DNA of 64,000 nucleotides from Syncephalis fuscata S228 (taxonomy: Eukaryota > Fungi > Zoopagomycota). The notes under the pieces were generated by a model. The model made no database searches, was not told the DNA's origin, and saw nothing but the letters and a program-made list of their open reading frames with translations. Every line of letters starts with the position of its first letter. Within the stretch, counting starts at the first letter, position 1. The stretch is from assembly GCA_025786725.1 (NCBI GenBank), contig JAHLTZ010000037.1, positions 1-64,000 of the forward strand. The letters run 5' to 3'. Shown one piece after another: positions 43,484 to 49,921 of the stretch. A program made the translations under genes and the position numbers.

Positions 43484-43743
43484 TGTTTCGTTGTCGTTGC
43501 CAGTCTTTCCTGGACTGATATTGGGCGCGTTCTGTTGCTGTGAAGTGGAATATACAGCTTTGTCAGTTGCAAACAAACAAATACTTGAGATAGATAGGTC
43601 GGGAGAAAGAAGTTTATAATATTCATATTTAACAATTATCAAGATTGTTTAAATAATTTGTCTGTTGCATAGAATCGGTGATACAAAATATATTGCGTAT
43701 TTGTTTGGTGTTTATCCATTTTGGTTGGTTATTTCTTTCATCA

Positions 43744-44722
43744 ATGTCGGATAGTGTTAATTATAGTGATGTTGGCGATAATCGCCACTCTTACCGACAT
43801 CGTCGCGGTGGAAGTAAAAGTCCAGATCGCTATGAACAGAGTCGGTCACCACCGCCATCCTCTTCTGTGTCGGCTCGGTATGATCGACGCGATAATAACA
43901 ATAGTAATGAGAGACGACATGGCGGTAGAGCACGTTCGCGGTCTCGGTCGCCGGGCTATCGACGACGCTCTCGTACGCCTGATCGATACCGCCGACACCA
44001 CTCTCGTTCCCGTTCTCGCTCGCTAGACCGACGAGGAGGTACTGATAATAGTACGCAATGAGGCGCCACTAATAAATATCATCGAGTAGATAGTTATGGG
44101 CGTGAGGATCGTGGTCGGCGCGACTATCGTAGGCGAGATGTTGATAGGCGAGGCAAGTCTACAGTATTTGCAGGCTATAATATAATTAATCAATCGATGA
44201 AATTTGATCCTAATCACTAATAGATACAAGACGTAGATCGCGCTCAAGATCACGTTCAAAAACAAGAGGACATCGATCACAGAATCGTTCACGTTCTAGA
44301 AGGTAGTGACTAGTCTAACAATATTCTATTATTCTATTACTAACTATTTATAGTACGGGTCGAACTATACGTTATGGTAGGCGATGACGGGCAATTAAAG
44401 TAACCATAGGTACAATAGGTAGCTAATGACCGATAAGTAGGAGATGAAGAGGAAGGAGCTATTGTGGATGAAAATGCAGCATCAGCTGATCCAGCTGACA
44501 CCGATGAAGCTGCTATGATGGCACTTATGGGCTTTAGTGGATTTACCACCACCAAGGTGTGTTTGGCTATCTTCTAATTGCTGCCAAGCTTATACTATAT
44601 TGTAGGGAGCTCATGTGCCAGGCACCGATGTGAGTGGATCAGATGTGAGAAAAGCCAGAACCTATCGACAGTATATGAATCGACGAGGCGGATTCAATCG
44701 TCCATTAGATAAAGTAACTTAG
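43744..44722 (+). CDS. SNRNP27: U4/U6.U5 tri-snRNP 27 kDa protein (RS domain + DUF1777)
   Basis: RS-rich N-terminus; C-terminal MMALMGFSGFTTTK|GAHVPG..RTYRQYMNRRGGFNRPLD; introns include 44039..44089 and GC-AG 44153..44223. Confidence 0.93.
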
Positions 44723-45275
44723 CACAGCAGACATATTTATTATAATAGTGCTACAATAAATATAGATGGTTTAAACTAAAGATACATTAATGTAAATAAA
44801 GAAATAATGCTAATAATGTTTAAAGGCTAGTGAATATTTATGTAATAAAATTCAATTGATCACGTAATACTATTATAAATATTAGTATAATTACTTGTTC
44901 AACATTTGTCATTAATTGCCATTGTTTGATTTAAATAAACTAAATAATATTTACAACAATTGGATGCAATAAAATAAATAGATTAACTATCAGGCTTTAA
45001 TAGAATGGTGATACGATAACTGCTTATCGCTTTTACAAGTTGCTAAATGTTTTAATTTATGTCCTTACGCATCTATTTGTTTTATTAATATTGTTTTTAT
45101 GTTGTATTCGCGATTTGTATAATAACAATGGCCAATTACACTATTTTAATTTCGGACTAACTTAATAATAATAATAATAATAATAAATATTATAATATTA
45201 TATGGCGGAAACGGTCTGTTAACGGTTTATTAATTTTATTTTTAGATTATAATAATTTAGAAGACTGCCTATTGA

Positions 45276-45694
45276 TTAGATAGACTGTAATCTATGAGGT
45301 TTTCTCTTTTCAGCAGCTTCGTCGGCATCGTGTTTTTTAATTGCTTCATCTATGGCTTTCTTGGCTCCGACGGCAGCGATGGTACCGGCTACACCAGCGG
45401 CAATAGGTAAAACGATTGGTGCTGCAGCACCAAGTGCTACACCAGCCCCAACGGCGGCAAGACCTGCTGACGTTGCCATGCCAGTGCCCGTGCCTACAAT
45501 AGAACCAGCGACAGGTGATGCCAATTCTTTAGATATCTTAGAGGCGCCATTCTTAACGTTGTCACCAAACTTTTGGAATTGTTCGTTTATACGATTCTCC
45601 TCTCTAGGCATGGGAACGGCATCCACACACATTAAAGTCATTTGAGTGGCGACGATAGCGATGGCCAAAAACTGGGTATAAGAGAAGAAACCAT
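45276..45694 (-). CDS. Small secreted glycine-zipper protein (cluster member 1)
   Basis: ATG 45694 enters the frame with +1 T (MVFFSYTQFLAIAIV..VDA/VPMP); amphipathic helix, then LASPVAGSIVGTGTGMATSAGLAAVGAGVALG hydrophobic hairpin; homologous to 46486..47000. Confidence 0.8.
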
Positions 45695-46485
45695 GTTGGT
45701 AATAGGTGGTAGTTATTGTAAGAGTAAAGCTTGCGTATTGTTCGTTAGTCGATTAGAAGTCCGGCTTCGGCGGCTTAGCTTGCGTGATATGAAGTGTAAG
45801 TAGTAAGCGGGATGTTGTGTTAGAACTAAAAGTTGCTGGTGAAGAATATTGCCAATTGCTTGTCATTTGACACATATTTATATTGGTATTTCCTAAGTTT
45901 CTAACGGAAATGTAGTTGCCGAGCTATTGAGCAGATACTAAAATTTGAAATGTCCAGAAAACGAAGTTTGGATGTGTCGCGTGATATTGTTACTTAAACA
46001 CGTGTCACAATAACAAAGTAGCTAACTTTTTTGGATGGATTATCGTTTTGTTTCTTAAACTGGTGACATTGATTATAAATAGATAAAACGTGCCATTGCT
46101 GTTTCCAATGTATTGCTGGTATTGGCTCTTAGCACAAACCAAACACAAAGGCACCAACTACATATAATTCGTTTTACTAGCACCTGTTTTACAATTTGGG
46201 CTTCTTTTTGTTTATCAATGGTTAGCCAGTGAGCAAGGCCTGTATTATAGCTGCAATTGTCCATGGATTGCTACTATTATCAAGTAACATGGTCTAAAAA
46301 GCAATTCTAAAGCGTGTTTTTTGAAACACTACATGTTTAATGATGCCAATAATAGTATCAACAAATTTACAAGTGTATATTTTGTGTAATAAGTTTATTT
46401 ATTTTACGGCTATTATATGGTATAATTAAACCGCTGATATTAGAATAGTCGTAAACTAAATATATATTGCTCACAATTATATATA

Positions 46486-47000
46486 TTATTTGGTAGCTGG
46501 CAAAGCATTTGGTGGCTTGCTGCTTAGTCCACCTGCCCTTCTTTGCTCTCTTTCTTCTTTGCGCTTTTTGTGTGCATCCAATAGGTGTTGAGTGCCGTCC
46601 TTAGCCGCCCCGTTTGCGGCAGTACTGACCGCACTGCTAACAACTGGTATGATCAAAGTGCTAGCCACTGATCCCGCGGCAAAACCTGCTGGGCCGGCCA
46701 GCGCTGTAAGTCCTGCAGTAACTCCAATACCGGCGGCCGTTCCAACGACGGCGCCAGCTACGGGAGAAGCCAATTGGTCACGTAAATGTTTGGCTTCCGC
46801 CTTAATCTTTTGGCCGATACGATGCAACCGCTCGTGCTTGGGCTTATCGGCTGGGTTTGCACCATTCGTGGAGTTGTGGGTTTTGGTGTATCTTTACTAG
46901 ACGATCCGTGTGGTATAGGAGTTGCTTCAATGACAGAAATAGTGACCAGTAAGGACACCACAATAAATACCAGCAGTTGAAGACGAGAGAAAGCAACCAT
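46486..47000 (-). CDS. Small secreted glycine-zipper protein (cluster member 2)
   Basis: Signal peptide MVAFSRLQLLVFIVV..IEA/TPIP (ORF 46758..47000) joins ORF 46486..46827 with +1 base near 46880; LASPVAGAVVGTAAGIGVTAGLTALAG. Confidence 0.8.
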
Positions 47001-48658
47001 TATAGATAATAGGTAGATGATTCTTTAAAAGTCGATAATAAAATGTTGGCGTTAAATAGCTACTGGAAGACCAGCTTCAGTAGGCAGTGGATTGTACGTA
47101 GATTGAAATAGATATGGGCGATTAGGAGCAGTAAGCTGCAATTCGTTCCGAGGCGTGAGTGATGGACGTTAAATCAAAGATATTTAGTTGTGATATTTAC
47201 AATAAAATAGCGTACATTTATACTAATATTTATTGATGCATGATTTTAATGATCAGGGTGTTACCTGGTCTTTGGTAAAGGCAAGGAGAACATTGTACTT
47301 GTGATGCCTAAACGTCGGATAGGGCCGCCCATTATACACAAGCACAGACAAAAGTCCGCTGATATTATTTATTATAAAGTACACAGCTTTTTTGCATACA
47401 AAAGTACGTAGCAATTAATTCTATTAAATCTATTACACTTTACTTGTGACGTCAAATTTGTATGGAGTACAAATGCTTGCTCTTTTGGTTTCTCATTTAA
47501 CAACATATGATTGGCGCTCTGCGAGTTGAGAAATATCACATGAAAACAGAGGCCTATTGTTTATGAACACAGAGTTCCATTAGTATGAGTTTTGAGGCAA
47601 ACGTAGTACAATTGTACTAAATGCCTTAGGTCGCTGGCAAAAGATAGGAACTAACCAAGAAGATATGAACATCGAAACAATGTATTAAGTGCAGCTTTTA
47701 AAATCGAATAAAAGTATTCTACTTTCACCTCATCAACAAACCATCTATCTGTTACTATATATGTGATTCACGCAGTTATAAAGCCTTAGCTATGTGTAAC
47801 ACTGCAATAATTGACATGAACAAATTCCAGTTTTTTGTTAAACCATCCAACTAAATTTGGTTCATAATCACGCTCTTTCGTAAAAAGATGGCGTGTTCTA
47901 TAACAACAACAGCTGAGTTGTATTAATTCCGGAGATTGAACGGGTTTTTTCAGAAAAATTGTAAAATGGAATAATAGAACAAAACATTTCAATTGCCGGG
48001 ATAAAAAAACTCCGATTGCCAATTTATTGGGAATTTATCGCCATGGCAAACCAACAAAGTGCTAACTATTTCGCTACTAAGGTCAACCAATGTTGCGCTA
48101 ATAGACTAAAGCTTGTGTCTATGGTATAATTGTATTACATACACCTGTGAAATGGCCAACATTTACCAAGTCATTATTTTAACAGAAACATTTCAAATAA
48201 CACAGTTGTCATTTTCAAGCAATATTGTTTGCTGATGACAACCAGATTAATCACACATGCCAGATTATCTATCATTTAATGCCCATTACCATATTTAGTA
48301 TAACAACGTGTACATTTCTCTGGATTTAGTTGTTAGTAGGTCGGTCATGTGAGTAATACAAAAATGTACAATACAAATAAAGCCACAGGCTCGACAAGCA
48401 GCTTTGCGCCCATTAATTACGATTTTCACATTTGCCATCAGTCTATTCCTTCTTACCTCAACCAAACATATCTACGCTAGTCATATTACTTTTACTTCAG
48501 TTATACGTAACGCAAATTATTTAAATAACCAACCAACCATTAAAATAACGATTTTCATTAAGTTATTATTCACTCAAATCAGCGCGATCCAACCATTCAA
48601 CGAGTGCGTTTTATTTCTCAAAGTTTTATTTAAGTAGCGCTAAATTGCTACATCTTTT

Positions 48659-49921
48659 ATGAGTGCCACCGGTGGTTCTACAAACATACATGGTCGTCGG
48701 CCTAGTAAGGTGACTGCGCAATGCGTCAATCTTTCCTTTCATGCTTTAAGTTTAGTTGTCATCTTGATGATGACCTGTTTGTTTAGTACCATTTCAGTTG
48801 CTCTTCCCATCATTATTGATCAGCCCAGTTCTGACCACAACAACAGTAACAGTAAAAACAATACCGTTAGCCTATCCCACTCCAATTCATCCGATACTTT
48901 GTTAATATCTGCGACCGATTCAAACAATTTATTAAACAGCACAACTCAGTCCCTCAACACGACCTCTTTGTTACCGCTGACTGAGTCGGAATTAAATAAG
49001 CACAATGGATCAAGTCTAGCTGGCATTGCAAAGACAGAAGTAAAGAATGCTGCCAAACATCTTGGAGTTAGTCTAGTAAGCGGATTGGTTGGCAGCAGTT
49101 TCGCTCAGGGTCTTTACAAAGGCCAATGGAGCCCAGCCACGGCCGAAACTGGAGGTGGAGGCTTAGGCACAACAACCAAAGTCACAACCTTGACAGCATT
49201 GGATAAATCTGGCTTAAACAATACAATGTCCATTGATCCTGCATCTAATGCCACTATTATTGACCAAGGACATCCAAAGTTTGATAAAAAGAAATTGGCG
49301 AAGACAGTGGTTCCTGCACTGGTAGCTGGCAGTGCAGCTTCATTAGCAGCATTTGGTGTTATTACTGCTATGGGCGGACCACGCGTTGACTCATTTATGG
49401 CGGCCAATGCAGTTGCTTCCGTAGTCTGGAACCGCACACAAACGGAAATCAACCGCAAAGTATTTGGCGTTGGCCTACGAAACAAGACTGCCGATACACG
49501 TACTCGACTTGAGCGCATCAAGGATACAGCTATCGGACTAGTACCCAATATAGTTGGTGGTGCAATGAATGGCATGGTTGGTGGTGCAATTGTTGGAAAG
49601 ATTGGTGCCAATGCAGCACTCAACGTACTTGGCGATAGGGGTAGAACCATATTAGGCGAAACCTTAAGTAGTGGATTTGGCGGTATGACTCAAGAAGAAA
49701 CTGTACGCGCTGTTCGTGCAGCGGCTAATCACATTGACTCGCCAATCACATCTATTATGCGTGGAGACACGACACGAAATTTTACCATGTCTGCTTCAGA
49801 CAATACCGCTTCATTTGATCCTCTATTTGCTGGTGGCACATCGGGCGCAGTTAGCAAAAGTTCAGCAGGATCGTCTACAGGACGTAGCGGGTTTGCTGGT
49901 TCTGGCAATGGTGGCAAATGA
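48659..49921 (+). CDS. Secreted protein with S/N/T-rich region and three basic-helix + glycine-zipper units (cluster member 3)
   Basis: Intronless 420 aa; hydrophobic leader ending SVA/LP; VKNAAKHLGVSLVSGLVG, KKLAKTVVPALVAGSAASLAAFG, RIKDTAIGLVPNIVGGAMNGMVGGAIVG. Confidence 0.78.
   Translation: MSATGGSTNIHGRRPSKVTAQCVNLSFHALSLVVILMMTCLFSTISVALPIIIDQPSSDHNNSNSKNNTVSLSHSNSSDTLLISATDSNNLLNSTTQSLNTTSLLPLTESELNKHNGSSLAGIAKTEVKNAAKHLGVSLVSGLVGSSFAQGLYKGQWSPATAETGGGGLGTTTKVTTLTALDKSGLNNTMSIDPASNATIIDQGHPKFDKKKLAKTVVPALVAGSAASLAAFGVITAMGGPRVDSFMAANAVASVVWNRTQTEINRKVFGVGLRNKTADTRTRLERIKDTAIGLVPNIVGGAMNGMVGGAIVGKIGANAALNVLGDRGRTILGETLSSGFGGMTQEETVRAVRAAANHIDSPITSIMRGDTTRNFTMSASDNTASFDPLFAGGTSGAVSKSSAGSSTGRSGFAGSGNGGK

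Follow-up and report, generated by a model that had tools for sequence, protein, structure and literature searches.

Could a mycoparasitic fungus carry a small system of secreted proteins designed to act on membranes? The question is raised by three neighbouring genes, here called m1, m2 and m3, in a stretch of the genome of Syncephalis fuscata S228 (assembly GCA_025786725.1, contig JAHLTZ010000037.1, positions 1 to 64,000), the whole of which, at its full length of 64,000 nucleotides, we refer to as the window. An earlier note, made from the letters of the window, had proposed that the three genes encode secreted glycine-zipper proteins and could form a membrane-active effector or toxin system. 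Sequence comparison indicates that m1 and m2 are a real, lineage-restricted and fast-evolving pair with predicted export leaders; in two species it adjoins a larger, conserved gene, and this genome holds a partial duplicate of the pair. A role for the pair as secreted membrane-active effectors is the leading reading, which we infer and hold tentatively.

A conserved pair of small paralogues

The open reading frames (ORFs) place m1 and m2 in tandem on the minus strand and m3 divergently from m2 on the plus strand (Table 1), as the earlier note had it. m1 and m2 share 34% identity over 101 amino acids (E 7e-13), and by this measure they are true paralogues. They also share a module, comprising a basic amphipathic helix, an L-A-S-P motif, a core of ~55 residues enriched in Gly, Ala, Ser and Thr that contains a G-P or G-A turn and, after it, a proline, a conserved A-K-(D/K) helix, and a tail rich in Lys, Glu and Arg; in mature m1 a short linker precedes the basic helix, and the Gly/Ala-rich core leads into a Lys/Glu-rich tail. 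The module that had been described for these two members is thus real, and family alignments show it in the relatives too. Across the wider family of small proteins the plan is a leader, a variable low-complexity linker, the basic amphipathic helix, an L-A-x-P hinge, a core of 35-55 residues and the Lys/Glu/Arg-rich tail, with the proline of the core as the sole invariant residue of the alignment. The description of the genes as intronless also fits, as both small genes of Syncephalis plumigaleata are single ORFs.

How far does this family extend? An exhaustive HMMER search, in which a profile of three paralogues was run against 1.84 billion representative proteins, returned six proteins at E <=0.001, five of them convincing: two are neighbouring genes of S. 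plumigaleata (assembly GCA_025201365.1) and three come from short metagenome contigs. The former are the orthologue of m1, KAI8054417.1 (P0003; 38% identity by tblastn), and that of m2, KAI8054416.1 (P0004; 41% identity, E 3e-13). A word-based protein search with m1 gave no matches, and one with the family profile returned only the known members. By these comparisons, the m1/m2 pair predates the split of this species from S. plumigaleata and is still adjacent in both, and the family is so far known only from zoopagomycete mycoparasites like Syncephalis. For the m1 orthologue, the deposited model of 253 amino acids begins ~56 residues upstream of the likely methionine of its leader.

The larger gene, m3, has two orthologues, one in S. 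plumigaleata (P0009, BDF22DRAFT_678999) and one in a metagenome (P0008), at 48-50% identity; these are its only relatives among 5.8 billion clustered proteins. Identity to the S. plumigaleata orthologue, of 403 amino acids, reaches 65% over 181 residues of the C-terminal half (E 1e-70). An exact look-up of m3 found no record, and scans of metagenome contigs for the m3 family and the m2-like group yielded no confirmed relatives. The deposited 403-residue model (L017:5480-6761, JAIXMF010000005.1) lacks 16 DNA-encoded residues at the position of a change of frame between ORFs, and it seems that a frameshift was bridged by an artificial intron.

In S. plumigaleata the m3 orthologue lies divergently beside the m2 orthologue across a gap of 1.8 kb, with the m1 orthologue next, such that gene order and orientation are the same in both species. 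On the m1 side synteny continues into an SR-protein-like gene and is then rearranged, and on the m3 side the flank is not shared. Within this conserved arrangement the proteins differ in their rate of change: identity to the orthologue is 38-41% for m1 and m2 and 50-65% for m3, against ~60-95% for the neighbouring housekeeping genes. Evolution as fast as that of m1 and m2 would be typical of effectors.

The earlier note had called for a count of paralogues and a map of their taxonomic range; besides the five relatives described above, this revealed extra copies within the same genome. A second locus on contig C112 holds an m3-like gene (982951-984091) and an m2-like gene (991401-991990), 7.5 kb apart, and is syntenic with a metagenome contig, L018. 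More distant members were found on contigs C79, C361 and C246, three additional loci, in a profile search of the genome's contigs. An ORF of ~100-114 amino acids upstream of the m2-like gene is conserved between C112 (L014:5537-5881) and the metagenome contig (L018:160-456), and with this ORF in both, the second locus is conserved in a relative too.

Leaders detached from their bodies

In m1, the ATG lies one base out of register with the body frame, which itself runs straight into the hydrophobic leader, and the break falls within codons 2-4. In m2, the ATG and a leader of 26 residues occupy one frame and the conserved module another, with one base missing somewhere in ~46840-46893, an interval bounded by stops in the body frame upstream of 46893 and by homology to relatives from ~46840. 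The leader and body pieces of both genes were searched separately, unjoined. The two leaders do align, as had been claimed, and homology unites them with one another and with the leaders that the S. plumigaleata orthologues carry in frame. The leaders consist of a short n-region, an h-region of 12-16 residues and, in positions -3 to -1, (V/I)-x-A, followed always by x-P and usually by x-P-x-P; predicted cleavage falls after V-D-A in m1 (then V-P-M-P) and after I-E-A in m2 (then T-P-I-P). By inspection and hydropathy, the features of a cleavable Sec signal are present in m2, in P0003 and P0004, and in the copies on C79 and C280, the latter nearly identical to the m2-like copy on C112.

Why, then, are the leaders out of frame in this assembly's m1 and m2? 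The S. plumigaleata orthologues carry theirs in frame with the body (the ORF of P0004 begins at the methionine of the leader, and P0003 has an in-frame methionine and leader), as does the paralogue on C79, an intact ORF of 161 amino acids whose leader ends in A-A-A, then L-P. An offset of one missing base recurs in the m2-like gene on C112, its near-identical copy on C280, the distant member on C246 and the m3 paralogue on C112. For this last gene a duplicate contig, C94, carries one base more than C112 at C112:983996, and this base would place the leader in frame, since the site lies among the few bases where both frames can join. Elsewhere, too, near-identical contigs differ largely by gaps: between C94 and C112:978000-986830 (8.8 kb) there are 55 gaps and 17 mismatches, and between C361:458913-462098 and C79:157934-161188 (3.2 kb) 36 gap openings and 45 mismatches, where C361 lacks a single base at 34 sites and C79 is gapped at 2. 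The C361 copy has three deletions inside the leader and 0 in the 400-nt body. On the strength of the in-frame orthologues, the extra base of C94 and the mainly single-base gaps between near-identical contigs, the offsets of m1 and m2 are most likely single-base deletions from assembly error, which agrees with the earlier suggestion that single-base losses had detached the leaders. The gaps between near-identical contigs are strongly one-sided and concentrate at the ends of contigs, upstream of genes and in leaders. The m3 paralogue also contains a run of 13 A in its coding region on the minus strand (C112 ~983688-983700; L013:5689-5701), where its two halves change frame, and this run has the same length in the C112 and C94 copies.

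Could the offsets be biological, i.e. very short introns, programmed -1 frameshifting, or real pseudogenisation in this strain? All copies but one are broken in or soon after the leader and in the same direction, whilst nearby long ORFs are intact, and a frame-restoring GT..AG pair can be drawn in m1 (20 nt), m2 (32 nt), C280 (26 nt) and the m3 paralogue (38 nt). However, at 20-38 nt such introns would be as short as the shortest known in fungi or shorter still, a single ORF spans leader and body at this point in the S. plumigaleata orthologues, the additional base of C94 falls within the short stretch where the frames of the m3 paralogue can join, many single-base deletions are demonstrated in the assembly, and the body ORFs are still open and conserved. 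We consider a biological origin very improbable, and the short-intron version was set aside. The assembly looks to be long-read based and incompletely polished, and with so many single-base deletions, ORF-based gene calls will miss or truncate many genes.

The larger neighbour m3 belongs to a separate family

The earlier note had counted m3 as a third member of one family with m1 and m2, and this was not supported. BLASTP finds no significant similarity between m3 and either protein (E 2.4 and 0.03); alignment of the m3-family profile to the m1/m2-family profile by hhalign gives P 0.026 and a probability of 1.9%, and covers just 37 columns, the very ones singled out in the earlier note. On m3 the hidden Markov model (HMM) of the module gives no more than 5.5 bits, which 4 of 500 composition-preserving block shuffles also reach, and its scores on the two m3 orthologues are reached by 37 and 48 of 500. 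A weak likeness in register can be detected among the blocks of m3 (P 0.0009-0.016) and between the small-family module and these blocks (P 0.004-0.085). What m3 has in common with m1 and m2 is only the general design and the end of the leader (A, then L-P). The two would therefore seem to follow the same design, with common descent unproven; by these comparisons m3 is a conserved neighbour from a separate orphan family, and not a demonstrable homologue of m1 and m2.

The N-terminus of m3 calls for similar care. A signal peptide ending in A-[VTL]-P had been proposed for all three proteins, and for m1 and m2 this prediction is supported. In m3, although the leader end is alike, hydropathy and the alignment of orthologues show a conserved stretch of ~25 residues before the hydrophobic segment, and because of this an uncleaved signal anchor is just as likely as a cleaved signal peptide. 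Behind this segment lie a sequon-rich region and the conserved C-terminal half. The 12 N-x-S/T sequons of m3, two of which fall inside the most conserved block, are what would be expected of a protein that faces the secretory lumen or the outside of the cell.

Orphan families with a borderline hydrophobic core

None of the three proteins has a match at threshold in Pfam, NCBIfam or the PDB. Together with the searches of 1.8 billion representative proteins, this agrees with the remark of the earlier note that no described family is like them, and as judged from these databases both families are orphans and previously undescribed. The glycine-zipper families of Pfam (PF13488, PF13441 and PF05433) find nothing at their gathering cut-offs in m1, m2 or m3; below the cut-off, among eight members of the small family, PF13488 appears in one (E 0.011) and PF13441 in one (E 0.33). 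The sub-threshold leads, to glycine-zipper, C19orf12, HlyE, SseC and SctB translocon families, are compositional and no evidence of kinship. Hits to LEA, lipid-droplet or ordinary membrane proteins had been named as grounds for abandoning an effector role, and in Pfam and NCBIfam there are none at E <=1 to LEA, YtxH, oleosin/lipid-droplet or ordinary membrane families. Profile searches of the PDB returned chance-level matches only (E >=0.25). The ESM Atlas held no usable match for m3, and for m2 only leads below 0.9 to small phage proteins and glycine-zipper clusters, which we do not use as evidence. AlphaFold2 models m2 (eight sequences of the small family) as all-helical, with four helices, at a predicted local distance difference test (pLDDT) score of 54, and m3 (five sequences) at a pLDDT of 35, with nothing usable.

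Is the core a membrane helix? In m1, m2 and the C280 copy the central hydrophobic stretch is free of charged residues; in a fixed scored window there are 0 in m2 and 2 each in m1 and C280, at the edges of the window. Their Kyte-Doolittle averages are 1.6-2.0, and one m3 segment reaches 1.8-2.0. The apparent energy of insertion is ~+2.5 to +8 kcal/mol for core windows, against ~-0.4 to -3 for the leaders (~-0.4 for a 19-residue window of the m2 leader), all of them rough figures. With these averages and positive insertion energies, the cores are borderline for membrane integration. In the relatives P0004 and P0005 the core contains Arg, Glu, Lys or Asp, and in the C79 and C246 members it is only ~35-40 residues long. 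These charged and short cores make it less likely that a transmembrane hairpin is obligatory, and favour amphipathic helices that may bind membranes under some conditions only; the amphipathic helices have a hydrophobic moment of 0.42-0.70.

The glycine zipper, a long hydrophobic core with GxxxG spacing, was central to the earlier proposal and survives in part. The cores of m1, m2 and C280 each contain 4-5 GxxxG-type matches, those of P0001-P0005, the relatives from S. plumigaleata and metagenomes, only 0-1, and some of these latter cores are charged; glycine is kept at two or three aligned positions in five to six of the eight members. The term would thus seem to describe the copies of this genome better than the family.

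What could the proteins do?

We can sketch how the proteins might act as membrane-active effectors. m1 and m2 would enter the endoplasmic reticulum (ER) and lose their leaders, and an X-Pro dipeptidyl peptidase might then shorten the new N-terminus. They could be secreted as marginally soluble helical proteins, since the core would not be hydrophobic enough to integrate efficiently during translation; the charged residues in the cores of P0004 and P0005 and the 10-12 N-glycosylation sequons of m3 likewise favour secretion over integration. The target membrane would most plausibly be that of a Mucorales or Mortierella host, at the site of contact or at the haustorial interface, where the basic helix would bind the surface and the helices rich in small residues could insert, pack via GxxxG-like faces, and perturb or permeabilise the bilayer. 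m3, whether anchored or secreted and glycosylated, and with its three similarly designed segments, could serve as a partner, carrier or self-protection factor. In a stronger version, which we judge unlikely, two co-evolving small secreted hairpin proteins that attack the membrane of the host fungus, and a larger three-module partner, anchored or glycosylated, that delivers them or protects the producer, would form a multi-component α-helical system for permeabilising membranes.

Comparison with known systems shows where this proposal gains and loses. Like the bacterial glycine-zipper toxins (Caulobacter CdzC/CdzD, class IIb bacteriocins and Pseudomonas Tse4), m1 and m2 are small, have Gly/Ala-rich helices with GxxxG spacing, and come from an adjacent pair of paralogous genes with an exported product. 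Unlike them, they carry a eukaryotic Sec leader and not a double-glycine, type I or type VI route, have a mature size of 85-200 amino acids, and conserve the zipper only in part; the locus has no recognisable immunity gene. They do not belong with the class IIb bacteriocins or CdzC/CdzD, given Sec-type leaders with n, h and c regions that end in A, then x-P, nor with the glycine-zipper families of Pfam, the best match of which is the one noted above, in one of eight members and below the gathering score.

A further lead comes from cecropins and melittin, in which X-Pro dipeptides follow the signal peptide and the pro-regions are removed by a dipeptidyl peptidase. These peptides also resemble m1 and m2 in the succession of basic amphipathic helix, Pro/Gly hinge and Ala/Gly/Val-rich hydrophobic helix, and melittin in the basic tail after its hydrophobic part. 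m1 and m2 are, however, three to five times longer, have a hydrophobic part long enough for a two-helix hairpin, and are fungal and not animal; the Cecropin family (PF00272) gives no match at E <=1, and the mature proteins of the m1/m2 family have at least 85 residues, against 31-39. Closer to home, the fungal toxins K1, zygocin and candidalysin (Ece1) are proteins of the secretory route whose hydrophobic or amphipathic helices attack target membranes, and for the yeast killer toxin K1 the need for self-protection is known. No search found sequence similarity to any of the three; unlike these toxins, the modules of m3 lack bracketing dibasic sites of the Kex2 type, and the genes m1, m2 and m3 are chromosomal and specific to the Zoopagomycota. 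The nearest comparison is with the S. plumigaleata orthologues KAI8054416.1, KAI8054417.1 and BDF22DRAFT_678999, at 38-65% identity and in the same order and orientation, which are themselves annotated as hypothetical proteins.

Several points weigh against an effector role. No homology to known toxins or pore formers was found in our searches. The structure models, at pLDDT 54 and 35, are unusable and too poor for fold searches, and the score of 0.00 for a predicted complex of m1 and m2 speaks neither for nor against binding. The glycine zipper is conserved only in part across the family, and a two-helix transmembrane hairpin would not fit in the short cores of the C79 and C246 members. Those of m1, m2 and C280 lie at the threshold for transmembrane helices, such that the proteins may reside in the membranes of the fungus itself. 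Finally, nearly all copies in the assembly are broken in or soon after the leader, a clustering that random error alone explains poorly; consensus errors where haplotypes or paralogues differ most, or basecalling errors near 5' ends that depend on base modification, are speculative candidates for its cause.

Could m1 and m2 then be resident membrane proteins of the parasite? After cleavage of the leader, a Gly/Ala-rich hairpin with both ends luminal or extracellular would sit in the ER, plasma or haustorial membrane, in a structural, scaffolding or small regulatory role, with m3 as a functional relative of several segments. The Kyte-Doolittle averages of the cores and of one m3 segment, at the usual transmembrane threshold, are consistent with this, as are the strongly hydrophobic segment of m3 after its conserved n-region of ~25 residues, which suits a signal anchor, and the central invariant proline and G-P turn, which suit a hairpin. 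Yet charged residues interrupt the cores of P0004 and P0005, those of C79 and C246 are short, the apparent insertion energies are positive, and fast evolution, lineage restriction and variable copy number would be unusual for housekeeping components of a membrane. On balance we regard residence as unlikely.

Or are the proteins secreted but non-lytic? They could coat the wall or surface of spores, appressoria or haustoria, act there as adhesives, or serve as lipid carriers of the apolipoprotein or LEA type, exchangeable proteins that, where parasite meets host, would take up lipids or screen them. The leaders, the all-helical prediction, the amphipathic helices, the low-complexity linkers rich in Pro, Ser, Thr and Asn, and a partner rich in sequons would all suit such proteins, and the tolerance of the cores for charge is as expected of soluble amphipathic bundles. 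Even at E <=1, however, Pfam and NCBIfam match none of the proteins to a LEA, apolipoprotein, hydrophobin, repellent or adhesin family, and a glycosylphosphatidylinositol (GPI) signal and a cysteine pattern are absent; we consider this explanation rather improbable. A lipid-droplet hairpin was set aside because a cleaved leader places the protein on the luminal side.

Layout of the locus

Table 1. Features of the m1-m2-m3 cluster, in positions of the window
Feature	Position	Strand	Basis or remark
m1, whole gene	45276-45694	-	ATG to stop
m1, body ORF	45276-45668	-	ATG separately at 45694
m1, start codon and predicted leader (signal peptide)	45618-45694	-	ATG 45694-45692; sequence reading, leader homology, hydropathy
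m1, mature protein and stop	45276-45617	-	ORF, m2 paralogy, orthologue P0003, alignments
GC-rich 19-mer, ~60-80 nt upstream of the m1 ATG	45754-45772	-	blastn against S. plumigaleata upstream region
m2, whole gene	46486-47000	-	ATG to stop
m2, body ORF	46486-46827	-	ORF reading
m2, ATG-led ORF carrying the leader	46758-47000	-	separate from body ORF
m2, start codon and predicted 26-residue leader	46923-47000	-	ORF reading, hydropathy
m2, Pro/Thr/Ser-rich linker with frame break	46840-46922	-	both frames read
m2, conserved module, basic tail and stop	46486-46839	-	m1 paralogy, orthologue P0004
m2-m3 intergenic region, 1.66 kb	47001-48658	.	ORF reading
m3, uninterrupted ORF, 420 amino acids	48659-49921	+	ORF reading, orthologues P0009 and P0008
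m3, N-terminal signal anchor or signal peptide with long n-region	to ~48802	+	hydropathy, orthologue alignment
m3, three module-like blocks	~49016-49123, ~49271-49438, ~49505-49693	+	residues ~120-155, 205-260, 283-345

The 19-mer upstream of m1 is identical at 18 of 19 positions to the region upstream of the S. plumigaleata orthologue (E 6e-4 by blastn); two more short matches follow it in collinear order, at E 0.007 and 0.08. Comparison with S. plumigaleata found no significant conserved non-coding block between m2 and m3, and there are no repeats above chance within 44800-48800. m1 is adjoined by an Arg/Ser-rich, SR-protein-like gene (43678-44743), the S. plumigaleata orthologue of which adjoins the m1 orthologue; a UDP-glycosyltransferase gene at the S. 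plumigaleata locus is absent from the window.

Two further observations concern the second locus on C112. An intact ORF of 278 amino acids between the m3-like and m2-like genes (~985926-986762; L013:7927-8763) resembles a secreted glycoside hydrolase, of family 16 by eye. In addition, the stop codon of the m2-like gene is followed, after ~0.8 kb, by a tandem array (~989564-990574; L014:1565-2575) of 12 copies of an 83-nt unit with 86% matches, part of which also forms the start of contig C280.

Significance

To our knowledge, almost nothing is known of the means by which obligate haustorial mycoparasites, Syncephalis among them, breach their Mucorales and Mortierella hosts and feed on them, and we know of no characterised effectors in this fungal group. 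There is also a practical side to the detached leaders: counts of secreted proteins and effectors drawn from ORFs will be too low for this genome until it is polished. As for the cluster itself, with its lineage restriction, fast evolution, conserved gene order, predicted export leaders and membrane-active design, it provides a concrete candidate for a part in this interaction. If the proposal is true, this would be the first multi-component membrane-permeabilising effector family described for the Zoopagomycota; at best, m1 and m2 would add one more kind of small secreted helical membrane-active protein, in a group of fungi whose effectors are yet to be characterised.

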